DNA from: Eutreptiella sp. 'Long Island Sound 2002'
Lineage: Eukaryota > Protista > Euglenida
NCBI GenBank assembly: GCA_964036045.1
Contig: OZ038378.1
Coordinates: 9,982,001 to 10,046,000 of the forward strand
Direction: 5' to 3'
Length of the DNA: 64,000 bases
Shown here: positions 15,516-62,958 of the stretch, piece after piece
Numbering within the stretch: position 1 is the first letter of the stretch
Layout of the letters: each line of letters begins with the position of its first letter
Made by a program: the position numbers and the translations under genes
The notes under the pieces: model-generated
The model's database searches: none
What the model was told of the DNA's origin: nothing
The model's input: the letters and a program-made list of their open reading frames with translations, nothing else

Positions 15516-18500
15516 ATACGTTTGTGTACAGGTGGGCGCTACGGGCCCATGTCGCACTCTCCACCCCCTACACGGTGATGGCTGGCAAAACAGGAAATCC
15601 CGCCGCAAGAGGCGCATGCTGGCAGGCCAGGCTCGGGCCGGCCGGCACGGCAGGGCAGGCACGGGAGTCACCCAGCCACAACCAACGGAAGGTGCTAACC
15701 AACCTGAGGGCTCAGGTACCAGGTACCAGGGCCCAGGTCTGCTGGATGGGGAGTTCAAAACGGGCCGCAAAGGTGTTTTTTTCATCATCGCAGATGGTGT
15801 AAATGCCACAAGAACCTTGGAAGATTCGATGTTTTAGGCACGTGGGGTGAAAAATCCCCCAGTTCGGTGCAGACTGCAATTTCGCTGCGTTGCTGCAGGT
15901 GGGACTCCAGTCATCCTGGTGCATCCTACCATGCTTCTTGCATCACAACATCACCGACCCCACCCCTCCGGGAGGGCATCACAGATCCCCAGCGCAAAAC
16001 TACTTCCATGAGACAACACAAAGTTTTCCTCAGAAGAACGGGGCATGTGCCTGTCAAAAAGGGCCGGGGCCAGCCCTTTTGGAAAGGCCAGTGGCCGCGA
16101 AACATGTCCTTTTGCCTCCCACCATGTTCGTGGGATCACATCATACCAACGCCACCCCTCTGCAGGAGCACCACAGGGCCCTATGACCTGGTCGTTCGGA
16201 CAGCTCGCCGGTAAGGCCAGCCCTGATAAGACTGGAGCACCCCCATCTGTCCCTAGCCCGCTGGTTCATACTGGTCTCCCGGTGTTCCTCCCCTTCCCGC
16301 ATGCATACACCCGACATCACGCGTCTGCCCACAGGTCCTGGCTGCCGTATGCTGCAATCGATGCCCAAGCTGCTTGCATTGCTTTGCAAGCAAGGGGGTA
16401 CTCCGTCACACTGTTAACGGGCGTGCGAGCGACAGAGGACCGTGTCTGCTCTGCACTCCGTGACCTCGTGGGCAATTATCGCAACTTGGGATTCTGGTAC
16501 GCAGGGCACAGTTGCAACAACGGTCGAAATCTACTTTTCTATGACACCGACGGGTTCACACAGAAGGAGAAGGACGAAACCACCGCAGATGTCATAGTCC
16601 AACAAATCAAAGAAGGTGTGCAAGGAGAGCCTCAGGTTTAGGTGGCAGGATTGCGCTCAACCGACTATCTAAGGGTCAGCCGACGTCGGTTGGGCGACAA
16701 CCGACAGCCGTCGCTGATCAGCCGGTGCTCTGTTGATGTCCGGGCGTCCTGGATGGCGGCACTTTTTTGGGGTGCATGAGTGGTGGTCCAGCATTTCTGC
16801 TGCGGCACTTCCTTCAGGTGCTCCGTATTCTTCAGGCAGTCTGCTGCCGCACTTGCTTCACGCCTGCACACACAGCCGCATCGTGTCTGCACGGTACCTG
16901 ATCCACGCCGGCCAGACGCCAGGGACGATGAGCCCATCGGGAATTCACACTGCAAGCGTCGGTGGACGGAGGCACAGGCCAGCGGCATGGGAGGAACTCT
17001 CAGTAACGTGGGGGCAGACGTGTGGGAGGGGGAGCACGGGCTGCGGGGTGGGTCGGGGGGGATCCTGCGGAGTTGTGAGCATAGGAAGTGACCCCAACGG
17101 TTGCCGCAGGATGTGGCTGTGTCATACACAACACAGCAGTCAATACGTCATCGCAACATAACACATTTCAACAGTTTGCTCCATCAAGGTCCTCTGCAAA
17201 GCAGGCATTAAGGGGAGAGACTGTATTCCCACACCCCTCTCCCCTTCAATGCACCTCGCAGCAACAAGCAACCAAGCACGTCCCCGGGCCGGTTTGCTGA
17301 TCAGCCCCTCTCGACGCTTTGAGCTCTATTCCACTGCAGCCATTTTGTGCATTGATTGACATGTGCTGTATTTCACACGAAGTGGGAGGGGGAGGCCGTC
17401 AGACTGCTTTTTGGAATTTGCGGGAACCTGGCGGCAATTTCTTGAACTTTGCTGCAACGCGTGTACAGGAACATGTGGAGACATGTTCTGCCCCCCGCCA
17501 AAGGGCCACCGGCAACCCGCCAGCCCTTTGCCTTCGCCCCCTCACACGGAGCGACACCCTCATACTCCTACGCACGTCCATCATGTTTGCTTTTCTTGTT
17601 CGGTTGCAGTCCCTTCTGAAGTGCATTCTTCCCACATACACTTCACTTTTGCACCATCCCAGGGGGTCCCGCCATCGTTGCGGTATCCACGCTCACAGCA
17701 TCGGGTTTCGGCCGCAGCATCAGCAGCTTCCAACACCTGAAAGCGGGGGTAGTGTACATGACGTGGCTGGCCCCCCGAGTGCCACGCGTACCATCATGGG
17801 CAAGCCCTTACCCCATGCACAGCCCCTGCACACGCAGAAGCCCACACTCCACACCCCTGCACACCACTTCCCGTGTTTGCATCCATGCATCTGCTGGCTG
17901 TCACACCAGCCACACCTACACACCACATTCACACCAAGAGACCCCCATGCCCACACGTTGACATCCCTGACCAGCGGTGCATCCCCACACATCTGCCAAC
18001 ATCAGGTGGTGCAGCCGACCACTTCTTCTCGGTCCTGGATTGCTGCCATGCAGGGTACATGGCGGAGGTGTTGAAGAGGCGGCTGATGGAGCACTGTCCT
18101 CAACTGTCCTTTGACGTGTTTACATCCACCCCACTGCACGTGTCAAGGTGTGCCCCCAGTGCCAGCGCTGGACATGCCCCCGACTCGCTCAGGTTGAGAG
18201 CAACTGCGCGCATTCCGCAGGTACAGGGTGGTGATCTTCAGGGGAGAGGCTGTGATCAGAGTCGTCGCACCAGCGTGAGGCGTCGGCTCCGTGAAACAGT
18301 ACAGAGGGGGGAGGCGGTTTGGTGGCACAATATCGTTTTCTAAAATAGAAACCGAAATTTCCCCCCAAAAAACGCTGTTCCCTGGCGCTTCATGTTTGTG
18401 GGCATTTCTGTTGCAGTCTCCGTTCGCCGTGCTGTTTTGATCCGCCCTTGTGCTGCTGTTGCCATCGCTGATCGTTTGCTGTGACCAGTGTACCCCCCAT

Positions 18501-21500
18501 CCCCACCCCATTTGGGGGGTTCAGCGAAGGAGGCGAATCATGGAGCCCGTCCCTCCATTCATGTCCTTTCCCTCCTCCCGCTCCCGCACCCCCTGCCACT
18601 ACTGCGCCCAGCCTGTGAATCTGATCCAGACCCTGCGCACAGTGCCCCGGTGCATTTCGGCATAACTTACGCACATCTTCTTGGGCGCACCTTTCCAGAG
18701 GGGCCTCCCCCCCAGCCCCCACCTGCATCGCGTTCGGCTTTGTTCTGGGGGAACAGACGGTTCCCCCATTCGTGGGCGTTGGCGTGTTTCATGCAGAAAA
18801 ATTCTGTCCGAATCGTGAGCACTCGCAGACAGGCGCACGCAGACACGCATGCGTGGAAGACATTGGCTGCGGGGATGTGCGTTGGAGGGGTGGTCAACAG
18901 GCCTTTGCTTAGTGGCTGGTTGATACTATACCGGGGGGGGGGGGGGTCAGAGGCCAAAAAAAAGTTTGTGTACCTAAAATCGACCTCCAAGTTCGGGCCC
19001 CTTTGATAAATTTCATTTTTCTCCTGAGGAAAAATTTTCTGATGTGGGTGGGTGGGTGGGTCAGCCAAAATCCCGGAGGGCCAATTTGACCCCCCCCCCC
19101 CCCCCCAGTATCACTAAGCAAAGGCCTGGTGGTGAAACCATTGCTTGGGGAGCATGCCCAGCCTCATGCGCAGCAGCGGGCGGGTACTGCGAGCCATTTG
19201 TGCAGTTTTGTGGTTTTGTGTGTCTGGGGAAGGCGTGTTCCGGACTCCTCTCCTTTGGTGTACCCCCGGGGGCCGCTACGCCGTGGCCTGGGTGGCGGTG
19301 GGAGCACTGCACGGCACCGGGTGCGCAACACACGCAGTCCCGTTGACCACGTTCTGCCGTGCGTCACAGAGCCTCGCCCCTGAACATCGCCATGGACAGT
19401 TACCAGAGCTTCACGGCGCGCATGGTCTGCTCCCTCATGCAGCACCAGGAGCGGGTCCCCGGCACCAAAGTGTTGGAGCAGACCACCGCCCCCTACGAAC
19501 CCCCGACCCCTTGGCCCACGAGTCCCGAGCCGCTGCTCTCCTTCGCCCCGAGCACTCCCCCCCCACCCCCGACGTCCGCGCAGACCGGGACGGATCCCGC
19601 CGGCACCGACAACAGCCAGCCCCCACCCATTGGAACCTCAAAGTTAGTGCCGACCGCCAGCCGCGCGCCGCGCCGCGCCCATAGCGCACCCCCCCCGATC
19701 CCGAAACCTGCCGCGCGCGCTCTGCCTGGCGGTCCTGCGGCGGATGTGGGCGACGACAGTGCACACCTGACGTACATGCACTGCCACACACTGCCCCCGC
19801 AGCCGCTGCCGTTCACCTGGGCCCCCATCCAGCGCTCCCCGCACCCGCTGCCCTCGGTTTGGGAGGCCCGGCCCATGTTCGCGGCACAGCCCCGCGGCGG
19901 GCCCTTCACGGAACTGCGGAACACGGTGCGCTGCAACGACCGCGACAAGACGATCCAGTGCCTTGAGGAGCTCAAGTCGGACCCCTCGATCTTGGCCCAG
20001 ACGGACTCTGCGGGGCAGAACCCCCTCCACTGGGCCTCTGTATTCAACAACCTGACGTTTTTGCAGATGGCGTATGAGTTGTTGGGGCGTTCAGGTGTGA
20101 GCAGCGGGGGGTCTCTGCAGGCGACAAGCCCTTGGGTCTGTTGTGGAGGGGTCCGCTTTGGCAGTCGGTTTGCGGACGGCGGTCGGCGGCCGACCCAAGT
20201 TTGTTTGTGGCGTGCCTCATGGGCATCCTTGTGTAGCGGAAAGTGCGATTCGAGGTCATCAGATTGCAGGGGCGTGGTCCCGCATGCAACCAAAGCTGCA
20301 GTGCACGGTCCGTGTACCCTCAGCACCCCCTGTACCCGTTGTAACCCACTGTTACCCCTGTCCTCCTGTACCCCCTTTACCCCCCGTACCCCATGTGGGA
20401 TGTAGGGTGTGGTCTATGCGTACAGGGCTGCAGTGCGAGTAGCGAGGCGGTTCACGTGCAATACGCCAACAGAATAGGGAAGTGTGTGACCAGGGAACAT
20501 TTGAAAGATCATCGATCGGAAATCAAAAGTCACGCAGTCTGTCATTCCGCTTCGTAGCCTGGCTGTCATTCCTGGTTTTATTTTCCAGTGGATCCCAGCA
20601 GCTTGTTGGTTGGATCTCCAGCCGTTCTCTCCCGCAGTGCTGGCCGTGTTCCACCCTCATTCAAATGCATGGCATGGCAATGCCATCTGCTGCTTCCGCC
20701 TGGAGTTCGAAGTTTGTTCCATGTGCATCATCTTTTGTCATGCATGCCTCAAAGTTTGTCTTCGAGACGCATTTCGTTACACATGCACCCAAAATTGTCC
20801 GTGGGGGTGGAGGAGTTGTTCGGGGGGTGGGGGTTCGACACCCCATTTTTCGATCGCCAGAGGTTTTTTTTTACGAATTTTATCGATTTTGCTCCAAAAA
20901 GGTTTTCCGGTCCCAGGTCCGTGGGGCTCTGGCTCTTCCTCAGGCCGGCCGTGGCCCGTTTGAAATCACTCTTTGCACTGAAAACAGGGTCAAAAGTAAG
21001 CAAGAGTACAAATCGTTGAAAGCAGGTTTTAGCCTCGACAGTTCAAAAATCCACATTTCCAAGACCAAGTTTTTTGCTACTGTGGCCAGTCACACTGATT
21101 CAAGCCAGTTTTGAAGTGGGCATGCGTGCAAGGGAAGGGAGCCCCCGCATCCCCCGGTGAGATTCCGTTCCAGCCGCTTCTGTCCGCCCCCAACCGCCCA
21201 CCAACCGTTGCGCAACCGCCCAAATTTGCTCTCCAACCATTTCCCCCCCAGCAGCTACCGCTTTGACCCCCTCTAATAACACCCCCCTCCAGCCCCTTGC
21301 CCGTACACCTGCAACGGACCCGCCCCTGCCCGTTGCCTCTGTCCATTGCGCCCCCCGCCTCAGTGGAATGGTTCAACCAGAAGGACAACAACCAGCGCAC
21401 GCCGTTGCACTTGGCGGTGTGGAACAACCACAAGAACTGCGTGCTGTTCCTGCTGTCCATCAACGTCGACAAGAACGCCCAGGACAAGGGCGGCTACACG

Positions 21501-24500
21501 CCGCTGTACTTCGCCGTGTACCGCGGCTACGAGGCCATCGTGCTGATCCTGATGGAACACCACTGCGACTGCACCATCCCGTCGTACATGCAGGAGAGCC
21601 ACCTGACGCCCCTGAACCAGGCCTGTGTGCTGGGGCACACCACCGTCATCCGGCTCCTGCTCGGGCTGGACAAGCGCACGCAGCACTTGCTCGTGTTCTG
21701 CCACCCGATGCAGAAGCACAACAGCCGCAACACGGTGGTCCAGCGCACCAGCCCCCAGCACACCCCCGACGACGCCGCGGGCTTCCCCACCGAGACCCCG
21801 GCGGCGGAGCCGGTGTCCATCGAGAAGCGGCTGGAGGGGTACGTGAACGACCCCGACATGAACAACAACACGCCGCTGATCTCTGCCATCCGCAACCGCC
21901 ATCTGGAGGCCGTCACGCTCCTGCTGCAGATGCGGGCCAACCCGGCGTGCACGGACAAGCACGGGGACACCGCGCTGCACATTGCTGTCAACGGGTCCTG
22001 CCTCCCGCCCCCCCATGCTCCCGCTGAGGCCTGCAGTGGACTGGCTCATGGTGCCGGACCCCCCCCCCCTCTCCTGGCCACGTGTTACAAATCCCCACAG
22101 CAGCAGTGGAGGGCACCCTCCACGGGGGGGGCCGTCTCCTCGGTCCGGGTACGCGACTCCCCCCCCCCCCCCTCCGGGCCCTCCGGGCCCACTTAGTTAC
22201 CAAGGGTCAATGGCTACTAGCCATACATAGGGGGAACGTTAGCGCGCCGGGCGCGCGCCGGGCATCTTTTTGGACCCGTGCCCCACCGGTGACCTTTTAG
22301 GGGGTGCGCTAAGGGGGCGCACTTAGGACAATCTTTGAATCCACGCTTCGTTGTATGGTGCATCATGGTGACCCCCGGCATAGGTTTTGACTTCCGATTT
22401 TGTTCCCTTTGTTGGGGACCCCCGAGAATGCAGGGGTGATGTAGCATTTCCGCCCTCTTTTGGGCCCCAACCGTCCGGTGCTATTGAGGAAACCGGGACA
22501 ATCTTTGAATCCACGCTTTATTGCGTGGTGCATCATGGCCCTCCCCAGGCAGGGGGTGTGGGCGCCTACAACCACCTTTGCATTGGTGAGGAGGTAGAGT
22601 GGAGGCCTCCGTTGTTGTAGAGTAACCCCTTAGGCCACCGCGTCTCTGCCAAACTGAACTAGACCTCTGCTAACCCCCTCCCCTAGCCCCCCTCCCCCCC
22701 CGGCAACTAGCAGCGACTAGCAAGTCCCTTAGAGAAGCCCTCCTCGGCGGCTAGCCCCCCCCCCCAAAAGCCCCCCCCCCCCCCCCCCCTAGGGGCCTTC
22801 GGCCCACTTCTGCTGGGGGGGAGAGTCGCGTCTAAAAGCGAGGAGACGGCCCCCCGGTGGCACCCTCCCTTCACGGTCTCAAAATGACTGAATGCGAAGC
22901 CTGTCAGCGCTGGAGTTGGAGCAGTCTTAAAAAAAAAATGGGGAGCGGATATTCCGCCTTCACCCACACCACTACCCCCCCCCCCCCCCCCTGCAGCTCC
23001 ACCAACGCCGCACCAACACCGACACCAACAATGGCGGAACGCGCTCACCCATGCAACAACAATAGAGGGCAGCCCAGGACAGCAAAGGACAGCCCAGAAA
23101 AGACGCCCGGGGCACTGCGGACCCTGGGTGATGAGCCAACAGACTCTTTACAGGGGAGGGGGGGGAGGCCGCGGACTCCTCCCTCTCCCCAACTGCGGGG
23201 ACGCGTACGAAGGGGAACTAGCCCCGGTCCCGAACCCTTAGACTGAGGGCGGGCGCTATGTGCATGGTCTACCACCGCCGCGTCAGCTAAGGCCATCATG
23301 CCAGCAAACAGCATGCAACTACGCCCAGGACAGACTGGGATATGTGGGCCAGCAGAAGCAAGTGGCCGAAACCACCCACATTAAGCACACTGACACCAAC
23401 AAGGAGCCCCCTTGAGCCAGGATCTCCCTCCTCAAGGGGAAGGAGGGGGCAGGGAGAGACGAACCCACTCCCACCCCCCCTCCCCCGCCCCCTCCCCTAC
23501 CCCCTCCCTACAGCAACACGCACCCCCGCCACCCAATGCCCCCCAGGGCAGAAAGAATGGAGAGGGCAGGGAAGAAACAGGGCAGGGGAAAGGGACGAAC
23601 CAAGGAGGGTAACAGGGCAGGGCAGACCGCGCTCGCCGAAAATGGTGCAGAGCGCAGAAGGGGAACAAGGAAAGGAAAAACGGGAAAAAATCATTGTGGT
23701 TGTTAGAAGCCCCTGTCAGGAAAATTATCCTGCAGATGCACACCCCAGCGCGCTCAAGTCAGTGCTGGAGTCGGCAAACCCAGCATGGACTCGGAGTGTG
23801 CATCTGGATGCACCTGGTCAACGGCACGGGCAACAGCCCATCTCCGGGACAGCCGACCCTGGAGTAGTCAAACAGGACAAGTCATCCAGGGGCTCCGTTG
23901 ACACGACCAAAACACGTTCGGGCCCACAGAGGGTCAGATTGAGCAGTGGCGAGAGGCCAATAGGCGCCGCCAAAGGCAAACAATCAGATACCGAGGCCTT
24001 GTGCCAACCCCCCCCCCCTCCTCCTGCTGACGTCTGACTGACAGCTACTGACTGCGATTGTCTGACTACCTGTAGGCAGACATGATGTTCTGGTTTCTGT
24101 TTCACACACAGTGTGTGTCTTGAGGTTTAACCAGGTTTGGCACAGAGAATAGAGATGCACTGATGCCTTACTGTGGGGTGCATTACCTCGGGTTTGCACT
24201 TGTCTGTTTTTTAATTGCCCCCCCCCCCTCCATTCTAAAGCAAGGTTGCATCCACTGACCTACATTCACCCGCCACCGGCAGGGTTCAGATGCAGTCATT
24301 CCTGGACAGCGAAGTTCAGGCGGGGTCCATACAGGATGGCAGGTTGACGTGCAGTACCACCGGACGTCCGGTGCCATGTCCGTTGTATGCCCTGCTTTGG
24401 TTGGTTGGGGGCAGTTCTGGGAGGAGGGGGGTCTGGTCTTGCCCTTTGGGGGGCGGAGGCCTGTTGGATCTGGTGTGCTGCCTTTTGTTTGTCTGTACTC

Positions 24501-45500: not shown

Positions 45501-45998
45501 GGGGCACATGCACTACGCCGTCCCGGGCGCTGGGGTGTCCCCCGTGACCGTGCGGTGACCCTCTAGCAGGGGAGACGGATAATGCCTGGTGCCTGGAGAA
45601 GCCCCGGGTGCTCTACTTGTACCTGTGCCTTCGGGTGCAGACTGGATGTTAGTGTGAGGAGGGTGGTTGGGGTTGCGTCTCCTCGAGCAGGGTGCTCCGC
45701 ATGACGACCCCCTGTGCATTTAATTGGAGGGTTGTCAGACAACAACACATCAAAGGGTGTGGGGGCAAGGCATGTCCAAGGGGCTCCATGAGCTCGCGCA
45801 TTGGCCTATGTCCCAAGGCCTGAGCACACACCAATGCCATTCACCAGCCCTCTGCAACCTCAGGGAGTCCTTCTGACTCCTCTGGCCCCTAGACAGGCTG
45901 AGAGCCCTAGCCCTGACCCCCCACTTGCCTGTGTCTGACCCCTAATTCTCCATAGCCCTGTGGCTCTACCCCTCTCGACATGCCAGGGCGGTCCTTAA

Positions 45999-46038
<40 letters not shown>

Positions 46039-49000: not shown

Positions 49001-52000
49001 GGACAGTTAGAAGTGTGTTGAGCTGGGGGGTGTGTGTTAAGTGTGTTAAGGAGGTTACCCACCCCTCCCCATCGTGCAAACAACGCTTGGGCCAAACATC
49101 ATGGGCTCACTTTGTGGTTGGGGAGTCATGCGTGTGTTTGCTGTAATTGTGGCAATAGTTTGGGGGCTGGGGATGGGATTTGTTATTTCGCAGTACATTT
49201 AGGCTGTCTGAAGGGGTGTGGTACGCCGCACCAGTCCCCAAAGGGTCCATTTTCGGGCACAGTGTCCTGAGACATGTGTGCGGAGGGCCAGCCATCAACA
49301 ATCCTGCGTCCAAACAACGCCCGAAGTTGTTGCTGGTAGGGTGAAGGTGTGAGACAATTGCGTTGTATTGTCAGGCATTGGCCGAACAAAGGGAGGGTGA
49401 CACCATCAAGGCATGCCAGCAACACAAAATATTTCATGGAATCCATTAGGAGACCACCCTTTTGGGGGTGTAGACTTGCTCACCTGTAATATACTCAGGG
49501 TGCAGGTCCACAGCCTCACCAAGCACATTCTGTGTGGTTGCAGAATGCATGCTTTTGCAAAGGTACGGTATGGTATGCAAGAACACTGATGGCGTCTCGC
49601 GGCCTCTTTGGGGGTGTAGATTTCGAAAAGAGCATTCTTCCTCTTCCGCAGTTGTTTTGCATTCTGGAGAAAGGGGGTGGGGCGCTTTGTAGGGCATGAG
49701 GGGTCATTTGACCCGCACCTTGGATTTCCTGAAATGGGTGGTGGACCAAAGGGGACCTGATCAGGTGAAGGGATTCAGCCAGTCAGGGCTGTGGAGCGGA
49801 GACAGCTGGACAGAGCTGTCCCAAAAGCAGCATTCAAGAGCTCCCAGTCACATGAGCACAAAGATCGAGCATCACGATTGGGTAATGTCCATTCAAAGCG
49901 AGATCAATGCAAATCACTTTGAAGTCCCCCCCCCCCCCCAATCCCTTGCCACTTGCTTAGAGACGTCACATGGTTCAGCTGTCATGTCACCTGACCCCTG
50001 GCCAAAAGGTCTCCACATCGACCACCAGGTGGGTCATACATAACAATGCCAAGCCCTCCAAAGCGCAAGGATTTCCCCACTGAACCTCTGAGCTGGCAGG
50101 GGCTCATCATCGGCCGGTCGTACCGGGTCCATCTCTAACCTTGCCATTTCGTTGTTTCTTGCAGCTGCGGGAGCCGCGTGACGTCGCACAGCGGTCTGGA
50201 CAGCCCCGGCAGGACGTTTATGGAGGGCAGTGCCACGGATGAGCTGTTCAAGCAGCTGGTCCGGATGCTGCTGGTGTCCGCCACGAGGTACACGCCCGCT
50301 GATCTCGAAAGTGCGGCCATTTTCCGCCCGCGGGCCCTGACAGAGCGGTCCTTTGGCATGCTGTGGCAGGACATCCAGGGGCACCCCAACAGCCGGCTGC
50401 ACTACCGCGTGCGGCGCGAGTGGCTGCAGTGCCTCGCGAAGCAGGTCTGGGCGTTCCTGGACACGCCGCTCTTTTGGGTGCGGCCCCAGCAACCGGCCCC
50501 AGGGCAGGCGCTGGCAGAGCCTCTTGGCAGAAACGACACGAAGGGCGATGCTGCCCCCCTGGGGCTGCACAGCGAGGGGCCCTTGGCGCGAGGCTGCGCG
50601 GCCACCAAGGAGCCAGTGGTGGTATGGTTCTGCTTGCACTGCGCAAGGGGAGAGGGTTGTGGGTAACCGCAGTGGGTAGGCGAGTTACGGATGGGCCACT
50701 GGTGTCCCTGGCCTGACCTCCCAACTGCTTCATACCCCCCTCCTCCCCCTTGCACAGACAACGCTTTGTCCAAACAACACTGGGTTGTGTATAAACAGCC
50801 CCTAAAATATTATTGGGTACAATGTCCTGAGGCATGTGTGTCACAAGCAAACAATGTTTTGTCCAAACAACACCAGATGTTATTTCCGCAACTTTTTGTC
50901 TTTTTGCTGTTGTTTGTGCGATGGGGATGAGGGTGTGAAATCACACATGGGCTGAGGGATAACGAATGGTGCCAATGTAAAACAGGAAGGCGGAAGGTGG
51001 TTACCTTTGGGCCAGTGGTGATTGCTGCATGGGGGGGGGGGGGCTCAGGAAGGGAGAAGTTCGCAGGGAAAATTTCGCCGTTAAGAAAAATGGGGAAATT
51101 TTTCGCGGCGTGTGACCAACAACTGCACTGCGAATTCAGATACAGGTGAGTACTGTGAATTCAGACATGTGCAGTGGTGTACTAGGCGGAGGGAAGAGAT
51201 GTGTTTCATAGAGTTCCCAGCACGCCCCACACACCCAAAAGAAAAGGCGGCCCTGCAACATTGAGTTATGGGCGCGCTGGGAGGGCCCTGCATTCTCTTG
51301 CGTGCATCCCACGGGGGGGTGGCCGGGCCCGGTCCTTGTATGCGACCCCCCCCAGCCCCCCCCCCCCTCCCCCCCCCCCCGGGTTTTGAAAGATAGTGGT
51401 GCCGGGTTGGCCACCAACAAGTGTCTCTAGAGAAAACTGTCTGGCGCCGAAGGCGCCAAAATTTTTTTTCATACTATGTGTTTATACTCAAAATACTCAA
51501 AACTTTGTAGAGAAATCATACTTGTGTTAAAACAACAAGAAAAAAATTTGACCCGAAGGAGGGCTACAGGAGGGCTACAGGCCCTAACAGCAACCACAAC
51601 CCTAGCCCTAATCAAGACTGAATATTGGGACCGAGCTGGTGGGGGAGGGAGCATCAGGGGGGTCCTTAAAGGACGAGATTTTTTTTTTTTGCTAAGGACA
51701 GCCCTTAAGGACCACCAACCGCCAACCGCCAACTCCCATCAACTGCCAGCCGCCACCAACCGCCAACCACCAACCGCCACCAACCGCCAGCCACCAACCG
51801 CCGCCAACCGCCAGCGGTGACCAACCGCCAACTGCCAACCACTGCGAACTGCCTCCAACCACCAACCGCCAGCCACCAACCGCCGCCAACCACCACCAAC
51901 CGCCACCAACCGCCAGTTGCCAACCGCCAACCGCCAACCGCCGCCAACCGCCAACTGCCAACTGCCACCAACCATGGTTGAGCACATGGAGTGCCCGCGG

Positions 52001-55000
52001 GCTTTTTTGGGAAACCGGAACACTTTTTTTCCTTTTCCGGTAAGGACACCCTTGGGGAACATCAACTATGACTGGTGAGGGACATCAAGAATGATTCACA
52101 CATTGATGGCTCTTGATAAAGTGAAATCAGCTTGCAAGTGAACCCCATCACCACAAGGCCCACTTTCAAGGCTTTTTGGACTTGTGAGGGGCCAAAATGC
52201 CCCAAAATGGGCTCAAAATGGGCTCATTTCACCCGTTTGTGCACCCCAAATGGTCTAGGATGAGGTTTGGAAAAATGCGTTTTTGACCCATTTTTGACCC
52301 ATTTTTGGCCCCAAAACAGCCCATTTTCAAGGCATTTTGGGATTTTCGGAGGACCAAAATGGGCCACCCCAAGCTCAAAACGGTCCAAAAACACTTGTTT
52401 TAGCATCGCACATGGTCTAGGATCATTTTTTAGAAAAGTCATCTTTTTGCCCCTACTGGACCCTGTTGACCCATTTGGGCACCCACCTGTTTGGGCTTGA
52501 GCTTGCAGCTTGCCGCAACCTAGTGGGCCTAGGTACGGGGGTCTAGGCGTCCATTTGGGCAATTCTGAGGGTTGGAAACCACAAAAAGTGGGGGGTTGCG
52601 GGTGGAGTAGGTGCCCTCGGAATCGCATTTTGAGCCATGTAGCCAAAGATATGGCCTATTCTTGGTTTGTGGATGTTGGCAACCAATCTCGAGCTTCTGG
52701 GGGCCTTTTTGGGCTGTTTCCGGGACATATCATGGAGTCAGAGGGCCGCAAAGAGCTCGTTGACACGGGGAAGTCAAGCCGCACGTGGAGTGCACCCACC
52801 GTTTGCCTTCGTTTGGCCGTTTTGAATGCGTTCCAGAGCTTCTTCGGCCCAAAAATGGCTGTTTTTGGCCCTAAACTGCAGTTTTTGAAACTGAGGTCCG
52901 CCACTTGCGGACCCCGTTCCCGGCCGCCACCGTCGAGTTTCTTGCTCATACTTTGTGTGATTGTACTTCACACCCATAGGTATCATCCACCAAAATTTCA
53001 CCTGAATCTGAAGCACCATGACGGAGTTCTGATTTTGGCCCATTTCGCGCGTGCTGCTTGCTTGCTGCTTGCTTGCTGCTTGCTGCTTGCTTGCTTGCTG
53101 CTAAACCTGCTAGGTCCACCCTAGACACTAAAAAGGGTTATAAAACCAAGACTGGTTCCACCAGCTCGGTGACCCTAACCCTAGGGCTAATCAAGACTGA
53201 ATATTGGGACCGAGCTGGTGGGGGAGGGAACATCAGCTATGACTGGTGAGGGCCATCAAGAATGATTCACACATTGATGGCTCTTGACAAATCCGGAATC
53301 GGCTTGCAAGTGAACCCCATCACCACGAGGCCCACTTTCAAGGCTTTTTGGACTTCTGAGGGGCCAAAATACCCCAAAATGGGCTCAAAATGGGCTCATT
53401 TCACCCGTTTGTGCACCCCAAATGGTCTAGGATGAGGTTTGGAAAAATGCGTTTTTGACCCATTTTTGACCCATTTTTGGTCCCAAAACAGCCCATTTTC
53501 AAGGCATTTTGGGATTTTCGAAGGACCAAAATGGGCCACCACAAGCTCAAAACACTTGTTTTAGCGTCGCACATGGTCGAGGATCATTTTTTAGAAAAGT
53601 CATTTTTTTACCCCTACTGGACCCTGTTGACCCATTTGGGCACCCACCTGTTTGGGCTTGAGCTCGCAGCTTGCCGCAACCTAGTGGGCCTAGGTATGGG
53701 GGTCTAGGCGTCCATTTGGGCAATTCTGAGGGTTGGAAACCACAAAAAGTGGGGGGTTGCGGGTGGAGTAGGTGCCCTCGGAATCGCATTTTGAGCCATG
53801 TAGCCAAAGATATGGCCTATTCTTGGTTTGTGGCCGTCGGCATTTGGAGCTTCTGGGGGCCTTTTTGGGCCGTTTCCACGACATATCATGGAGTTAGAGG
53901 GCCGCAAAGAGCTCGTTGACATGGGGAAGTCAAGCCGCAACTGGAGTGTACCCACCGTTTCCCTTTGTTTGGCCGTTTTGAATGTGTTCCAGGGCTTTTT
54001 AAGCCCAAAAATGGCTGTTTTTGGCCCTAAACTGCAGTTTTTGAAACTGAGGTCCGCCACTTGCGAATCCCGTTCCCGGCCGCCACCGTTGAGTTTCTTG
54101 CTCAAACTTTGTGTGATTGTACTTCACACCCATAGGTATCATCCACCAAAATTTCACCCGAATCCGAAGCACCACGACGGAGTTCTGATTTTGGCCCATT
54201 TCGCGCGTGCTGCTTGCTTGCTGCTTGCTTGCTGCTTGCTGCTTGCTTGCTAAACCTGGTAGGTCCACCCTAGACACTAAAAAGGGTTATAAAACCAAGA
54301 CTGGTTCCACCAGCTCGGTGACCCTAACCCCAATCAAGACTGAATATTGGGACCGAGCTGGTGGGGGAGGGAACATCAGCTATGACTGGTGAGGGCCATC
54401 AAGAATGATTCACACATTGATGGCTCTTGACAAAGTGGAATCAGCTTGCAAGTGAACCCCATCACCACGAGGCCCACTTTCAAGGCTTTTTGGACTTTTG
54501 AGGGGCCAAAATACCCCAAAATGGGCTCAAAATGGGCTCATTTCACCCGTTTGTGCACCCCAAATGGTCTAGGATGAGGTTTGGAAAAATGCGTTTTTGA
54601 CCCATTTTTGACCCATTTTTGGCCCCAAAACAGCCCATTTTCAAGGCATTTTGGGATTTTCGGAGGACCAAAATGGGCCACCACAAGCTCAAAACGGTCC
54701 AAAAACACTTGTTTTAGCGTCGCACATGGTCTAGGATCATTTTTTAGAAAAGTCATCTTTTTGCCCCTACTGGACCCTGTTGACCCATTTGGGCACCCAC
54801 CTGTTTGGGCTTGAGCTTGCAGCTTGCCGCAACCTAGTGGGCCTAGGTATTGGGGTGTAGGCGTCCATTTGGGCAATTCTGAGGGTTGGAAACCACAAAA
54901 AGTGGGGGGTTGCGGGTGGAGTAGGTGCCCTCGGAATCGCATTTTGAGCCATGTAGCCAAAGATATGGCCTATTCTTGGTTTGTGGATGTTGGCAACCAA

Positions 55001-58000
55001 TCTCGAGCTTCTGGGGGCCTTTTTGGGCTGTTTCCGGGACATATCATGGAGTTAGAGGGCCGCAAAGAGCTCGTTGACACGGGGAAGTCAAGCCGCACGT
55101 GGAGTGTAACCACCGTTTGCCTTCGTTTGGCCGTTTTGAATGCGTTCCAGAGCTTCTTCGGCCCAAAAATGGCTGTTTTTGGCCCTAAACTGCAGTTTTT
55201 GAAACTGAGGTGCGCCACTTGCGGATCCCGTTCCCGGCCACCACCGTCGAGTTTCTCGCTCCAACTTTGTGTGATTGTACTTCACACCCATAGGTATCAT
55301 CCACCAAAATTTCACCTGAATCCAAAGCACCACGACGGAGTTCTGATTTTGGCCCATTTCGCGCGTGCTGCTTGCTTGCTGCTTGCTTGCTGCTTGCTGC
55401 TTGCTTGCTTGCTGCTGCTAAACCTGGTAGGTCCACTCTAGACACTAAAAAGGGTTATAAAACCAAGACTGGTTCCACCAGCTCGGTGACCTTAACCCTA
55501 ACCCTAACCCCCCCCCCCCTCACCCCTGGCTGGACACCCCCATGACCCCCGGCTAGGACCCACCCCCCGACCCCCGGCAGGAACCCCCCCCCCCGACCCC
55601 CGGGAGGACCCCCCCCCCAACCCCCGGCTGGACCCCCCCCCTGCCCCCCCCCCCCCCCCCGAGTTTTGAAAGATAGTTGGGGGGTGGGTCGCATCAGGAC
55701 CAGTTGTAGCCCCCCCCCCGTGGTGCATCCGGGTGGCGTTGTGTGGCTCGGTGATCCTTCCAACAGTTCGCAACATGCAGCGGTTGTGTGACTGGAATGC
55801 ATTGGAACTAAGAGGAACCATCGAGAGCCCACCACGAAACAACGGCAAGCTTCAGGATTCCTGAAGGTGGCGAAATTTTTCCCTTCCGAAATCATCCCCC
55901 CCCCCTTGTAACACACACATACATGTTACCAACCCTTAGGTAACCTTTCACCCCCTCCCAACAGCAGGCAACCTGCTTCGGCCCCGCGATAGGGCCGTGG
56001 TTGAACAAACACCCCAAGCAAATAACTACCTGGGCCCCACTACAGGGCCCTAGTCCCTGGAGGAGCACACAGCAAGCGCACAGCCACACAGGCCCCACTG
56101 CACAGCCCTGGTACAAGAACTGTAGACACCAACAGCTGGCAAGAAAGCCCCCGCCCACTCCACCTGACCTGTGGGTCTTTTAGGGGATGACCTCTTCAGA
56201 GGCGCCAAAGGGACATGGTCTATGAGTCGGGAAACAGCCCTCACACCAAGCATGTCCTGATGGTTTGCCCCCTTGCAAGTCACTAAAAGACACAGCACTG
56301 TGTGGGGGCCACCAACAACAGAGCAAACAGGAGCCATTAGGATGGCCCAAGAGATCTCCACAAGGGCACAAGGGACAGGTGGAAATGGGGGAGGTCACCG
56401 GGGTGGGGGGGGGGGCAGCTGCAGGCCTTGACGCCCTCCCCCCCCCCCCAAAGTGGCAAAAATGTTTTGCAGGTCTCAACCTTACTATGCGCCAATATGG
56501 GGGAATTGGCTGGCGCCACAGGTGCTGGGATTTTTTTTTTTGCCCATTGGAAAGGGTCAGTGAAATTGTTTACCCATGCTCAAAATGCTCAGCCTTTATG
56601 GTGAATTCAAATATGCATCAAAAAAATAATAAAAAAAATGATCCCAATGGGGTTCTGAGAAACTAGATCACGGGGTTTGCTACCGGACAGGACCCGACCC
56701 CAAGGGGGCAGGGTGGACCCTCCCCTCTACGGACCCTAAAACGGTTGCATGGAACAATGGGTTTTGTGGGCGCCGCAGGAACCGCAGATTTTGTTTATTC
56801 TTACGGTACGGGTGAATTTTTGTTTTCACCGGGTGTTTTTATACTCAAAATGCTCAGACTTTGCAGGGGATTTCAAGCATGCCAAAGACCTGTGAAACAA
56901 TTTTCTGCCCATTTGCTTCCCACTTCAGGTCTCATCCCCCGCGTTGAGTGTTCGGGATTGAGCGCCGGTGGTTACATAGTGTGCTCTTTCTTGTTCTCTG
57001 TTGCCGACTCTTGGGCTCTTCGAGCGCCAGTGGTCACATAGTGTGTTCTTTTTTTTTTCCTCCCTTGCCAACTCTCGGGCTCTTTGAGCGCCGGTGGTCA
57101 AATAGTGCACTCTTTTTTCTGCCCAATTCCATCAAACCGTCCATGTTTTGAGCGCTCGTGCAATACAAGGTGCTGTACAAATGTCGTTTGTTGCTCTTTC
57201 GGAAGATCCCGTGGAGGAAGGACATCCTCTTTTGCGACACAAATACGTTGAACATTTCAGGGAGGACTCTCTGGCCGCGTCCCCCTTGTATGGGAATGGC
57301 CAGGGTCTCCCCGGCGAGTGAACACGACGAACCCAGTGCTTTGTTGGTAAGTGATGCAGTGTGGAGATGTTGGGATTGAGTAGGCTTTTTCCGGTGGACC
57401 ACATAGTGCGCTTTTTCTTTTTGCCCAATTCCATCAAACCATCCATGTTTTGAGTGCCAGATCGTGCAAGACGAGGCAATATACAAATGTAGGTTGTTGC
57501 TCTTCCTAGAAAGTGTCCCCAGTAGCCACTCTTGGTCTTATGCCCTTCCCTAGAAAGTCATCCCTTGTTTGCAACAGGCGTAACAGGTTGCTAAGGTTCC
57601 CGGTGTGGCTAGGAATACCCAAGCCGATGATAGCCTACCTCTATTGGCGTAAGGGGCGGTGCAAAATGTTATATCACACCTGGGCTGCACCAACCGTTCG
57701 GAGGTGCCCGACAAAAAGGTAGTGGGTGCGGGTCTACGGTTTGTGTCCAGGGGGTTGGGGGGTGGGGGGCCCCGCCCCCCCACAACCCCCAAAACGGTTG
57801 AACACCCCTTGGGGGGAGTCGGGAGCAACCCCCGTGAACTAGATATCGTGAGGGGCTTTCAGGGGGTTCCTTAAGGAATCTTTTTCTTGTTAAGGACCGC
57901 CCTTGACGGCGCTGTTTTAGAGGCCAATACTGGCCATCCCCCCCCCCCCCCCATCGGGGACCCCTGAGGAGGCAAGGGGAGGAGGCGCTTGCATATTGTG

Positions 58001-58853
58001 TGACGTACGACACCTCGGAGTCGTACAACGCTTCGGATTGTACAACGCATCGGGGCCGTATGACATGTTAGGGCCGTATGATGCGTTGGGGCCATACAAT
58101 GGGTCGGGGCCGTGCGACACGTCGGGGCCGTACAACACCTTGAACCACACCTCCCGATTGCGTTGTACGCTCCCGGCATCGGGCTCCGACGCCTTGTACG
58201 ACGCCCCAACGTGTCGTGCAATGCATTTCTGACAATTCTCCTGCTTTTTGCGTTAGGGTGTGCTAGCTTGAGTTTGTAGGAGGAAATTGTCTAAACTGCC
58301 AGTCCCCGGCCATGGGGCAACAAATGGCATTTTTACTCAGCCTATCTGGCAACCCCCCTGCCCCCCCAACCATGAGCTTATTGGCTCTGAGTGTGGGTGG
58401 GTGGGTCGGGGGGTCACCAAGTGGGTGGCTTGGCGGGTGGCGGATTTCCATCCACACCATTCCTGCCTTCTCCAATTATCCGACATAAACTACAAAACAG
58501 AGGCAACACTGTACAGCAAATTTATGCGAGACGCCGAATTATGCTCCTGCCTTTACCCATGGTGCCCCTTGCATCATCTTTGTCCCCAGGCCCGCCTGCT
58601 GGTCACCAAGGACCTCATTCACACGGATCTGTGCTCGCCCTCACGCATCCGCTTCCCTGTTGGCAAGCGCAATAGCAAGCGGCGTAGGCAGCGCTACCTA
58701 CTTGCCACAGTCTTCCAGGAGCATGAAGTGGGCCGGCTCAGAGACCTCCTCACGCGCCTGGCGAGGTACAGTTGGAAGCTCAATATTACCAACAGCAATG
58801 GCTACCACCGGTTTAGCCGCATCAGTGTCCTCGTGCGCCACGAACGTGGGGAG
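15516..58853 (+). CDS. Giant multidomain protein gene: caspase - ankyrin repeats - RING - 2x CesT-like - pseudo-caspase - U-box - unknown C-terminus (17 linked exons, 2450 codons; start and stop not identified)
   Basis: Exons 15516-15574, 16335-16615, 18006-18147, 19370-20094, 21364-21994, 25174-25747, 25949-26275, 31068-31508, 32544-33074, 36583-37408, 38823-39337, 40878-41183, 44727-45343, 47006-47429, 48750-48979, 50165-50621, 58590-58853. All GT-AG with matching phases and lengths consistent with the phases; several junctions complete domain motifs in register (e.g. TALHIAVNG|ALEKFVDKLL). The first exon and the joins after 41183 are less certain. Confidence 0.8.
15752..16184 (+). repeat. 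~430-bp dispersed repeat, inverted relative to 26943-27381
   Basis: agttcaaaacgggccgcaaaggtgttttt...ccacagggccc matches the reverse complement of 26943-27381 with few indels. Confidence 0.9.
16335..19450 (+). CDS. Caspase/metacaspase (peptidase C14) domain 1, His-Cys dyad retained (exons 16335-16615, 18006-18147, start of 19370)
   Basis: LPYAAIDA...LQARGYSVTLL...AT...FWYAGHS (His codon 16507-16509) ...QQIKEG|GAADHFFSVLDCCHAG (Cys codon 18044-18046) ...FDVFTST...YQSFTARM (p10-like). Confidence 0.85.
18898..19128. mobile_element. hAT-type MITE
   Basis: 17-bp perfect TIR CAGGCCTTTGCTTAGTG, extended by GATACT and G/C runs; 8-bp TSD gtggtcaa/gtggtgaa. Confidence 0.9.
19900..25330 (+). CDS. Ankyrin repeat region (~7 repeats over three exons)
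   Basis: GQNPLHWA, QRTPLHLA, GYTPLYFA, HLTPLNQA, NNTPLISA, GDTALHIA and GETALDVA, with canonical spacing. Confidence 0.95.
23735..24015 (+). repeat. SINE-like dispersed repeat ending in AGGCCTTGTGCCAA plus a C-run
   Basis: Shares its terminal 14 nt and C-run with 5465-5590 and 7520-7640. Its translation (...SGERPIGAAKGKQSDTEALCQPPPP) recalls a high-copy euglenid repeat (from memory). Confidence 0.6.
25358..25480 (+). CDS. C3HC4 RING finger
   Basis: CLICSSLLYEPCTLSCGHTFCMYC...LCPFRC. Confidence 0.95.
25575..26190 (+). CDS. Type III secretion chaperone-like (CesT/Tir chaperone fold) domain 1
   Basis: LKFNENNTVHI...ELYVYHVLHK|GLP...LTMILEGNLLG...GGITI...IVLHM...ALREVITVFAKCAKGW matches the recalled CesT pattern (L.fd...; LL.aNl....ga.lgid; C-terminal helix ...f...a..W). 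No HMM run. Confidence 0.7.
26943..27381 (-). repeat. ~440-bp dispersed repeat, inverted partner of 15752-16184
   Basis: ORFs 26602..27243(-) and 15890..16186(+) translate to nearly identical peptides. Confidence 0.9.
27990..29240. repeat. Diverged ~550-bp tandem duplication or nested repeat family
   Basis: ccattgtgtgt(c/t)aatt(t/c)agacct at ~28158 and ~28708; gtgat(c/a)atttggtgacaat at ~28382 and ~28940; related sequence at ~59820-59890. Confidence 0.55.
31068..31470 (+). CDS. Type III secretion chaperone-like (CesT) domain 2
   Basis: NLHFDNNKTWHL...DCLYVFSPVWNGLP...LYEKLLRLNLF...GAGVGIDTHGDFVLIH...LLHDCTKLFMSQ; aligns by eye with domain 1. Confidence 0.75.
32750..37060 (+). CDS. Caspase-fold domain 2, catalytically dead (exons 32544-33074 and 36583-37408)
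   Basis: KLALCIGISKY...LPGCVEDA...FQKLGFHV...NESAT...FSGYG (Tyr at the His position, 33009-33011) ...HFILDCDFA (Asp at the Cys position, 36667-36669) ...WVMAAC...LGRFTYCCYSTL. Confidence 0.85.
41672..41830 (+). repeat. (CACCA)n pentanucleotide array with CACGC/CATGC variants
   Basis: Directly visible. Confidence 0.98.
41831..43426 (+). mobile_element. 5'-truncated non-LTR retrotransposon: RNase H plus C-terminal CCHC zinc knuckle and 3' UTR, flanked by (CACCA)n
   Basis: ORF open to the stop at 43259. RNase H residues VAVDAG / QEGEAMAL / VPDSEAAV / TPSHW..LNVRVDAA; zinc knuckle CLLCGTQPETAPHLWAC. No RT or APE (truncated) and no poly(A). Confidence 0.85.
43427..43460 (+). repeat. (CACCA)n array at the 3' end of the LINE
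   Basis: Directly visible. Confidence 0.95.
43490..44280 (+). repeat. Degenerate ~46-bp minisatellite (cactgcccactgccccgtgcagtgcagcggtgtac...aggag)
   Basis: Unit starts at about 43802, 43848, 43897, 43943, 43989 and 44035. Confidence 0.85.
43547..43741. mobile_element. hAT-type MITE with a GAATTC-rich core
   Basis: Imperfect TIR CAGGGATGCCGATTTG vs reverse complement TAAGGATGCAGGTTTG; 8-bp TSD aaggagag/aaggagac; core of repeated gaattc/cgaatt palindromes. Confidence 0.75.
44286..44522 (+). repeat. Perfect (CACCA)n array, ~47 units
   Basis: Directly visible. Confidence 0.99.
44790..45000 (+). CDS. U-box domain (divergent)
   Basis: PYYTDFITGLVKLRPVLTSDRRSYDEYSIKCWLTWFKSSPVTGRTL...DRDTREIIAEHL fits the PV...TY.R..I..WL....SP.T...L pattern; the N-terminal CPIT motif is degenerate (DFIT). 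Confidence 0.8.
45984..46300. mobile_element. hAT-type MITE carrying (TC)n and an inverted pair of telomere-like tracts
   Basis: Perfect 15-bp TIR CAGGGCGGTCCTTAA / TTAAGGACCGCCCTG; TSD cgacatgc/cgacacgc; core of degenerate (CCCTAA)n then (TTAGGG)n centred at ~46120. Confidence 0.92.
51611..55510 (+). mobile_element. Tandem array of three ~1.15-kb non-coding elements with 13-bp subterminal inverted repeats and CCCTAA-like spacers
   Basis: Units start at 51611, 53190 and 54333 (atcaagactgaatattggg). IR accgagctggtgg at 51630, 53209, 54352; its complement ccaccagctcggt at 53158, 54307, 55475. Each unit is followed by accctaaccc-like sequence and has an internal (TGCT)n tract. Confidence 0.9.
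51655..52054. mobile_element. hAT-type MITE (CAGGGCGGTCCTTAA TIR family) with an (AACCGCC)-like repeat core, inserted in array unit 1
   Basis: Left end CAGGGGGGTCCTTAA, right end GTAAGGACACCCTTG; TSD gggagcat/gggaacat; the empty site gggaacat-cagctatg is present in units 2 and 3. Confidence 0.9.
56955..57490 (+). repeat. Three ~63-bp tandem units plus a duplicated block
   Basis: gagcgcc(g/a)gtggt(t/c)a(c/a)atagtg at ~56960, 57022 and 57086; gcccaattccatcaaacc at ~57121 and ~57423. Confidence 0.8.
58030..58145 (+). repeat. 18-bp minisatellite (gtcggggccgtacgacac-like)
   Basis: Periodic gggccgta; the minus-strand ORF shows a period-6 peptide repeat. Confidence 0.8.
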
Positions 58854-62400: not shown

Positions 62401-62958
62401 ACAAGCTGTGCCACACACTGCCTCACACATTGCCCACACCGCCCGGTACTACCCCACACACCGCGCCACTACGCACAGCCCCACACACTGCCACCACTCG
62501 CTGCTACCACCACATACTGCCCCCCACCCTCCACCACCATCCACTGCCGCACACACTGCAACACATATTGCCACCATACACTGACCCCAAAAGTGCCGCA
62601 CGCACTGCCCCACCCACTTCCATCACACACTGCCCCACCCACTTCCATCACACACTGCCCCACACAACGCCAAATATCGCCACCACACGCTGCCACCACA
62701 CTTTGCCCCACGCATTGCCCCACGCAGGCCCACACACTGCCGCCGTTGACTGCCCCACACACTCCACCACCAGATTCCTCTACTTCGTTTTCAGGCACTG
62801 GGGGCGTCGTGGAGATTGAGAAAGGGTTCCTGAGTTGGAACGACTGCGAGACCGACGAGACAGTAATGCTTGAGCATTTCAAGCTTTTCTTCTGCAGCAC
62901 AGACTGCAGCCCCATCGGCCTCATGCGCCACTACACGGAGGAGACCCCTCGACAGCAG
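59173..62958 (+). CDS. Further probable exons of the same gene (~59173-59324, ~61979-62222, ~62795-62958); link to 58853 unresolved
   Basis: GC3-rich open frames with cag|...|gt borders; 62222 to 62795 is phase-1 compatible (TVFQG|TGGVVEIEK). The phase between 58853 and 59173 could not be reconciled. Confidence 0.5.
59404..59602 (+). repeat. (GT)n microsatellites
   Basis: Directly visible at 59404-59438 and 59557-59602. Confidence 0.95.
60130..60210 (-). other. tRNA-like pseudogene or SINE head with Pol III A and B boxes
   Basis: Minus strand GGGGTTTGCTCAGTGGTAGA (A box) ... GAGTTCAAATCCC (B box) at tRNA-like spacing; the stems do not pair properly. Confidence 0.5.
61550..62770 (+). repeat. 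CA-rich degenerate repeats (cacagcac; cacactgcccc) in introns at ~61550-61920 and ~62280-62770
   Basis: Directly visible low-complexity periodicity. Confidence 0.8.

Follow-up and report, generated by a model that had tools for sequence, protein, structure and literature searches.

A spliced euglenid gene of about 47 kb probably encodes a giant ankyrin, RING, CesT-like, pseudocaspase and U-box protein of a conserved euglenozoan family

Introduction

Segments resembling a caspase, ankyrin repeats, a RING finger, type III secretion chaperones of the CesT kind, a second caspase domain and a U-box follow one another on the forward strand of a 64,000-nt stretch of the genome of the euglenid Eutreptiella sp. 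'Long Island Sound 2002' (contig OZ038378.1, 9,982,001–10,046,000). This stretch, at its full length, is the window to which all positions below refer. The locus raises the question of whether these segments belong to one gene and, if so, what its product might do. An initial annotation made from the letters alone had joined them into a single gene, with an architecture not known to its author from any described protein. In our analysis the domains, the three junctions that it named and the minimum length hold, while the 3' end had to be corrected. We consider it likely that the region is one protein-coding nuclear gene, spliced and about 47 kb long, whose product, some 2,600 aa long, is a member of a conserved euglenozoan family and would act as a scaffold-type E3 ligase. 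The gene lies on the + strand, extends from before position 16335 to 63027 and comprises some 18–21 exons.

Gene structure

Collinearity with a set of homologues supports one gene. Family members were sought by an exhaustive HMMER search with the exon at 31068–31508, which encodes the second CesT-like domain, as the query; 86 proteins were recovered. The full-length homologues are P0003 (1,847 aa), P0004 (1,846 aa), P0005 (1,982 aa) and P0007 (1,678 aa), all from metagenome contigs, and P0009 (2,057 aa), which is EP01012_P028311 of Entosiphon sulcatum. A profile built from these five finds 13 blocks in the window, strictly in order (HMM positions 21–1859; window 19959–63012), intact and without stop codons. 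Likewise, tblastn of the homologues gives collinear matches over 19908–63012. The homologues are single open reading frames of 1,678–2,057 aa, uninterrupted in the metagenome members, and the same order of core domains therefore exists elsewhere as one polypeptide.

Between seven neighbouring pairs of blocks, all frame-keeping GT...AG pairs were tried and the joined peptides were scored against the five-homologue profile. The best junctions are 21994|25174, 25747|25949, 26275|31068, 33074|36583, 41183|44727, 58853|61964 and 62222|62795. All seven share one splice pattern, i.e., an exon-final G (AG in six of the seven) followed by GT, and a pyrimidine-rich tract followed by CAG. Two of them, 26275|31068 and 41183|44727, had been proposed beforehand from the letters alone, and each was reproduced exactly as the top-scoring pair; the donor at 41183 bypasses an in-frame stop at 41249. 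The gene had also been taken to end at 58853, and this part of the annotation was wrong. Position 58853 is a splice donor (GAG|GTGTGC), and two more exons follow, to a stop at 63025–63027. The last 160 or so residues of the homologues map to 61964–62222 and 62797–63024, and the final three exons tile the C-terminal domain of the homologues with no gap or overlap and with the same end residue.

The remaining gaps were filled by modelling codon usage, with the confident exons as the training set, and by applying splice-site rules. The assembled chain has 21 exons and 2,613 aa, with the TGA at 63025–63027 as its sole stop; its match to the family profile, in three collinear stretches, amounts to 1,112 bits. 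It reaches residue 2,451 at position 58853, which agrees with the minimum of 2,450 aa first suggested. The exons at 31068–31508, 32544–33074, 36583–37408, 38823–39337 and 40878–41183 combine overlap with profile blocks and typical splice sites. Those at 47067–47429, 48777–48979 and 50165–50621 (codon-usage scores of 40, 15 and 50, respectively) are predicted from codon statistics and frame-compatible splice sites only; they contain no recognised domain, and the homology search found no relative of any of the three. Three small exons chosen by the program (45575–45634, 46736–46807 and 48605–48613) have poor splice sites, are doubtful and should be ignored.

Direct evidence of splicing comes from four estuary metatranscriptomes, for which contig mapping covers window positions 15600–21599. 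The joints 16615|18006 and 18147|19370 are each present in mismatch-free RNA contigs from two runs, in one case with 114 and 152 letters on either side of 18147|19370, and the joint 20094|21364 is present in a mismatch-free contig from one run. The introns so demonstrated (16616–18005, 18148–19369 and 20095–21363) are all GT..AG, and junctions supported by RNA or by the profile look alike, with an exon end in G, nearly always AG, before GT, and a CAG acceptor. The joint 18147|19370, which links the caspase-like exons to the exon with the first ankyrin repeat, is the third junction named in the initial annotation. Because 18147|19370 preserves the reading frames of both exons, the caspase-like exons are cis-spliced to the exon that holds the usual N-terminus of the family. 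Further downstream, the four metatranscriptomes contain 7–13% of the words of 24965–33266, a stretch of which the exon model makes about 23% exonic.

The 5' end lies upstream of 16335. An RNA contig carries 43 extra letters upstream of 16334 that are not located within 15600–16334, which implies an upstream exon of at least 43 nt. These letters fit, without proving it, a candidate exon at 15516–15574 that is phase-compatible with 16335, although its donor (ACG|GT) is atypical for this gene. An isolated stretch of coding-like codon usage (score 19) was also noted at 11499–11747 on the + strand, at a distance of 4.6 kb on the 5' side of the earliest exon to be confirmed, and might be another gene or an extra 5' exon.

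Domains of the conserved core

Pfam was run on stop-free + strand segments. The domains named in the initial annotation proved to be real, in collinear + strand reading frames, some of them strongly supported and others recognised only with the help of the homologues. The core starts within the exon at 19370–20094, which has RNA joints at both ends. This exon carries the final part of the caspase-like domain and then a linker of about 165 aa, rich in Pro; an in-frame ATG (19872) and the first ankyrin repeat follow. Residues 3–17 of the homologues map by tblastn to 19908–19947 of this exon. The following exon (21364–21994; RNA contigs at 21386–21599) encodes further ankyrin repeats, with an Ank_2 match of 100 bits against a cut-off of 27.3 (E value 1e-28; segment 21267–22193; profile block HMM 67–235).

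The exon at 25174–25747 (block HMM 211–427) contains the last ankyrin repeat, a C3HC4 RING and the first half of the first CesT-like domain. The RING scores 22.6–23.2 bits against cut-offs of 27–30 (E value 7e-5; segment 24965–25903), while that of homologue P0003 reaches 30.9 against 27. All metal ligands are present and conserved with the homologues, although the last pair is spaced C-x3-C (C-P-F-R-C), as it is across the family. The first half of CesT-like domain 1 ends the RING segment, and only the second half of the Pfam profile (positions 52–118; E value 0.002; segment 25925–26416) is matched by the next exon, 25949–26275, which has a profile-best junction at either end. CesT-like domain 2 is complete within 31068–31508 (35.2 bits against a cut-off of 22; E value 1.5e-8; segment 31032–32054). 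In the Euglena gracilis homologue P0002, CesT is matched in two stretches with 64 bits.

A model of the tandem CesT-like pair, built on P0002 with the window exons in the alignment, has a pLDDT of 86 and a pTM of 0.84. A profile of the pair found no match among PDB sequences, and fold comparison alone was informative. Each half has the secretion-chaperone fold, with a Foldseek probability of 1.0 to ExsC, SicP, CesT and VecA and TM scores of 0.73–0.83 by target. The fold originally assigned to these domains is thus borne out by both Pfam and structure comparison. The pair as a whole resembles bacterial tandem YbjN proteins, trypsin-YbjN fusions and a phage protein (TM 0.66–0.69 over about 250–275 residues). 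From the model we infer that the pair would mimic a chaperone dimer.

The internal caspase domain is divided between two exons. The N lobe (32544–33074) matches Peptidase_C14 with 33.7 bits against a cut-off of 21.4 (profile positions 2–83), and HFSGYG takes the place of the His motif. In the C lobe (36583–37408; block HMM 811–849; coding score 117), which is followed by a linker, LDCDF replaces the Cys motif. The position of the catalytic His is occupied by Tyr here and by R, Q, N, A and A in the five homologues, and that of the Cys by D, N or E, or by a deletion, across the six members, with Asp in this copy. The initial reading of this domain as a pseudocaspase is thus supported, and the loss is general: by its residues, the domain is a conserved pseudo-enzyme, retaining the fold without the catalytic pair in all six members.

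Next comes a small conserved domain with the motif G-x-L-H-G-x-x-x-G (exon 38823–39337; block HMM 976–1092, E value 1.6e-8; weak match in the paralogue described below), the beta character of which is predicted from sequence only. The exon at 40878–41183 (block HMM 1151–1201) precedes the U-box and is joined to it by the profile-best junction 41183|44727. The U-box and a subsequent helical stretch are encoded by 44727–45350, whose 3' border is uncertain, the frame being open to 45413. Its Pfam score is 16.8 bits (E value 0.008) against a cut-off of 21.4, compared with 29.3 bits for the same domain of P0005; the core D-x-x-T-G...P-V...D-G...W...S-P-x-T-G is conserved, with a Gly to Arg change in this copy.

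After the predicted exons without recognised domains, the C-terminal domain is assembled from three exons. A helical lead-in and the first strands are found in 58590–58853 (block HMM 1665–1710), the middle of the domain in 61964–62222 (block E value 1.2e-15; tblastn matches of all five homologues), and its end, level with that of the homologues, in the last exon, 62795–63027 (block E value 5e-21). The model of this domain is an Ig-like sandwich (pLDDT 73), matched best by a domain present in fungal Peptidase_C14 proteins (TM 0.63) and by a cluster that contains DUF4384 (TM 0.54). Among solved structures there were generic Ig-like sandwiches only, with Z ≤6.5, and apart from the Atlas link to caspase-associated domains no specific family can be named.

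Distribution of the family

In the homologues the order is ankyrin repeats, RING, two CesT/YbjN-like domains, inactive caspase, small conserved domain, U-box, a variable helical region and the Ig-like C-terminal domain. Pfam searches of P0002–P0005 recovered, between them, the ankyrin repeats, the RING (above its cut-off in P0003), two CesT stretches and the U-box (above its cut-off in P0005). Partial homologues are P0002 (795 aa; EG_transcript_3750 of E. gracilis) and P0010 (996 aa) from the diplonemid Flectonema neradi. Judged by profile and domain order, the core is a conserved family of Euglenozoa, both euglenids and diplonemids, and of metagenome organisms, and not a one-off. The supposed novelty of the architecture therefore holds in part: the core is shared with Entosiphon and, in partial form, with E. 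gracilis and Flectonema, while the N-terminal caspase-like domain is confined to this locus. No description of the architecture (RING and U-box, tandem CesT-like domains, inactive caspase) was found in the full-text literature searched. Two further searches contributed little. A family search with the full-length alignment was dominated by ankyrin proteins and hence gives no information on the range of the family, and a search with residues 390–1847 of P0003 returned P0003 itself only, its candidate list being filled by low-complexity words.

The metagenome contigs differ in composition, one having 77% GC, one 68–71% GC, and one being AT-rich and carrying the homologue beside a bifunctional DHFR-TS gene. 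Gene calls on these contigs are dense and on both strands, and include HNH and helicase genes. On the contig with 77% GC (L017), a gene for a 487-aa Peptidase_C14 protein (103–1566) is located three genes, or 4.4 kb, upstream of P0007 (6001–11037) on the same strand. The neighbours of the homologues on L017 and on a second contig, L020, have no similarity to the window, and a relation of the L017 Peptidase_C14 gene to the N-terminal domain here is thus not shown.

Within the 2.28-Gb Eutreptiella assembly (2,317 contigs), two copies of the gene are present, and no third locus was found. The paralogue is on the minus strand of contig C5 at about 15.41 Mb (approximately 15,400,000–15,434,000). 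Its collinear part extends from the first ankyrin repeat up to and including CesT-like domain 2. Weak matches to the exons at 38.8, 41.1 and 58.7 kb of the window are also present, but neither the N-terminal caspase exons nor the internal caspase N lobe has a match there. Its introns are longer in the ankyrin-to-CesT part, with a repeated peptide-coding motif between the ankyrin exons. P0002 of E. gracilis is only 57–80% identical to either of the two loci, and the genome is therefore that of a different euglenid from the sequenced E. gracilis strain.

CesT-like domains also occur in other contexts. Other matches combine the domain with a RING, with ankyrin repeats and a RING, with TPR, or with NB-ARC/TPR with or without OTU. 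It is fused to ubiquitin in Diplonema papillatum and to a PDZ domain in Trypanosoma melophagium, in a protein named 'Tir chaperone protein (CesT) family'; Leishmania genes are likewise annotated as CesT family (PMC7105377, PMC6247020). Two of the proteins, P0006 and P0020, are of the STAND type, with NB-ARC/TPR and two CesT-like domains, and P0020 has in addition a C-terminal OTU protease, which makes it a second architecture placing a tandem CesT pair beside a domain of the ubiquitin system. Fusions spread across Euglenozoa, recurring beside ubiquitin-system domains, indicate a general module that is uninformative on bacterial effectors. The idea that the CesT fold points to binding of type III secretion effectors consequently does not follow, given the fusions in trypanosomatids and Diplonema and the matches to YbjN proteins.

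The N-terminal caspase-like domain

The exons at 16335–16615 (RNA contig 16334–16593) and 18006–18147 (both junctions in mismatch-free RNA contigs) encode the regions of a catalytic His (WYAGHS) and a catalytic Cys (LDCCHAG), respectively. In the spliced peptide LDCCHAG follows 44 residues after WYAGHS, so that both residues are kept in the order and spacing typical of caspases, and the 19370 exon continues with a segment that resembles, on inspection of its motifs only, a later conserved part of the fold. BLASTP against the Pfam-annotated Peptidase_C14 protein of L017 aligns 140 residues (E value 0.007), with WYAGHS and LDCCHAG in register with AGHG and DNCYSG. Language-model (Atlas) features of the 16335–16615 exon give a score of 0.94, and 93 of 100 matches are to Peptidase_C14 clusters. 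A database search with the N-terminal caspase exon returned only an identical open reading frame of another assembly. Taken together, the motifs suggest that this would be, at best, a very divergent member of Peptidase_C14. An origin by internal duplication was considered and finds no support, as hhalign aligns the N-terminal and internal caspase domains in register yet weakly (probability 4.7%). The domain is found at this locus only, is carried by at least three extra 5' exons and is joined to the core by the Pro-rich linker; none of the homologues has such an extension.

Several observations weigh against a single gene with the composition proposed here. For the N-terminal domain, exon-by-exon searches (single exons and not spliced peptides were used) gave no Pfam match and found no relative in the PDB or in word-indexed databases, and the first strand of the fold is absent from the 16335 exon. 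In this copy, both the RING and the U-box are under their Pfam cut-offs. The homologues all start at the ankyrin repeats, which is where the in-frame ATG at 19872 lies. The RNA contigs were mapped over 15600–21599 only, and among the contigs listed 19520–19892 is uncovered. A molecule that runs from the caspase-like domain into the ankyrin repeats is therefore deduced from two overlapping joints and an open frame, and is not seen directly; RNA contigs by their nature cannot prove one molecule.

The last of these points would also be explained if the locus made two products. Trans-splicing of a spliced leader just ahead of the ATG at 19872 would then create the start of the main mRNA for the ankyrin, RING and U-box protein, the caspase-like exons would form an upstream unit, and 18147|19370 would represent a minor or read-through isoform. 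Euglenids use trans-splicing, the homologue starts map just inside this ATG, and the intervening 165 aa are of low complexity and rich in Pro. Nevertheless, we regard two products as unlikely, since the joint 18147|19370 is canonical, in frame and present in two runs, and the 19370 exon itself seems, again by its motifs only, to contain the final conserved segment of the fold. Moreover, the frame from 19370 to 20094 contains no stop, so that a product of the upstream unit alone would have no stop codon, and the RNA contig beginning at 19893 carries no unmatched letters of a leader. A single cis-spliced gene thus remains the reading that we prefer.

Proposed function

For the product of this single gene, the domain content makes a large scaffold-type E3 ubiquitin ligase the most likely role. 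The RING and the U-box would recruit charged E2 enzymes. Holding substrates or partners would fall to the ankyrin repeats, the two CesT-like domains and the beta-sandwich at the C-terminus. Joined in tandem, the CesT-like domains may be a covalently linked version of the chaperone dimer that grips extended peptides. The inactive caspase domain would serve as a binding or regulatory module and, in this copy, may partner the N-terminal protease-like domain; both the protease activity of the latter and its pairing with the inactive domain are conjecture, prompted by motifs.

A role in defence is possible by analogy. In its most far-reaching form, which we think decidedly improbable, a single chain combining an active caspase-like protease, its inactive partner, a peptide-gripping CesT pair and two ligase domains would be a switch for cell death or against invaders: once the CesT pair had bound a foreign or unfolded protein, the protease would be freed and ubiquitination directed, and the core would be an ancient euglenozoan immune module, shared with organisms of compact genome, which may be viruses. 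A related proposal is that of an immune or cell-death sensor in which the tandem CesT-like domains capture injected bacterial or viral proteins and so switch on the caspase-like protease and both ligase domains. Domains of such types are indeed encountered repeatedly in conflict systems. Pairs of CesT-like domains are found in the NB-ARC/TPR proteins, one of them with an OTU protease, a domain similar to the C-terminal one is attached to caspase homologues of fungi and bacteria, and family members lie on compact metagenome contigs together with HNH and helicase genes. On the other hand, there is no sign of induction, of diversification or of expansion in copy number, the genome having two copies only. 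The order of the core is conserved across distant euglenozoans, which a housekeeping role would explain equally well, and CesT/YbjN domains are common where there is no secretion system at all. A sensor of this type is accordingly very unlikely in our estimation, and we retain the scaffold-type ligase.

Every domain type in this protein is known. What is new, as far as the literature searched is concerned, is the combination of a RING and a U-box with two secretion-chaperone-like domains in tandem and with an inactive caspase that is conserved. The conservation of the core between euglenids and diplonemids makes it probable that this is an ancient machine under functional constraint and not an accident of annotation. 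It offers a concrete case of CesT/YbjN-type domains within the eukaryotic ubiquitin system. The two loci also constitute a natural experiment, as one genome has one paralogue with and one without the added caspase-like domain, and the role of euglenozoan caspase-fold proteins becomes directly testable. For annotation, the implication is that in a 2.3-Gb genome such genes are findable only by chaining exons across tens of kilobases.

Introns and repeats

The introns are canonical GT-AG, measure 0.2–8 kb and have accumulated transposons and tandem repeats, including a MITE; the GC content of the window is 47–65%, and microsatellites and dispersed repeats are numerous. An open frame of 553 aa, retroelement-like by inspection, lies at 41598–43256, wholly within the intron 41184–44726, flanked by (CACCA)n arrays at 41672–41830 and 44286–44522. 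A dispersed repeat of about 420 bp is present at 15752–16164, just upstream of the 16335 exon, and, inverted and with 94.6% identity, at 26958–27381 in the intron 26276–31067. The 8-kb intron 50622–58589 contains a tandem element of about 1.15 kb (52055–55500), several copies of which are also found in the C5 paralogous locus with 50–95% translated identity. Within the intron 18148–19369, the segment 18898–19130 is 90–95% identical to many RNA contigs in all four metatranscriptomes, some of 1.8–3.4 kb, which are far deeper than the contigs of the gene itself; the probable explanation is a dispersed repeat that is expressed, or else an element conserved in other transcripts.

Although the retroelement frame, the MITE and the 1.15-kb repeats, together with three small exons at poor sites and middle exons without homology, could be taken to mean that the locus is a decaying, transposon-swollen pseudogene with a chain that is open in part only because splice sites were selected to keep the frame, this is hardly credible in view of 13 profile blocks that are intact, ordered and stop-free, of junctions that were picked by homology score yet fall on canonical sites, and of the spliced RNA and the RNA words counted over 24965–33266.

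Comparison with known systems

The closest system is the euglenozoan giant family itself, with which the predicted product shares the order of its domains, beginning with the first ankyrin repeat and continuing to the very C-terminus, the RING ligands, the U-box core and the lost catalytic residues of the internal caspase. This copy, however, has in addition the N-terminal caspase-like domain and linker, about 310 aa in all, and is divided by some 20 introns, whereas the metagenome homologues are uninterrupted.

Class I type III secretion chaperones (CesT, SicP, ExsC, SycE; PF05932) and the YbjN superfamily have, according to the model, the same alpha-beta-beta-beta-alpha-beta-beta-alpha fold as each CesT-like domain, with an rmsd of 2.1–3.3 Å. 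The chaperones are small free homodimers encoded beside a secretion system and an effector, whereas here two copies are internal to a eukaryotic chain of about 2,600 aa, and the closest matches to the whole module are bacterial tandem YbjN proteins and trypsin-YbjN fusions. With the metacaspases and orthocaspases (Peptidase_C14), the N-terminal domain shares the His and Cys motifs in order and the internal domain a score above the Pfam cut-off. In contrast to those enzymes, the internal domain cannot be a protease of this type, as its catalytic positions are occupied by Tyr and Asp.

The pairing of an active with an inactive caspase fold is known from caspase-8 and cFLIP. The likeness is an analogy only: in the Eutreptiella protein both caspase-fold domains are in one chain, about 1,100 residues apart, and homology is shown for the fold only. 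Finally, plant XB3/XBAT and animal Mind bomb proteins have ankyrin repeats directly before a C3HC4 RING, as is the case here, but they are without CesT-like, caspase-fold and U-box domains, and their size is between a quarter and a third of that of the protein proposed for this locus.

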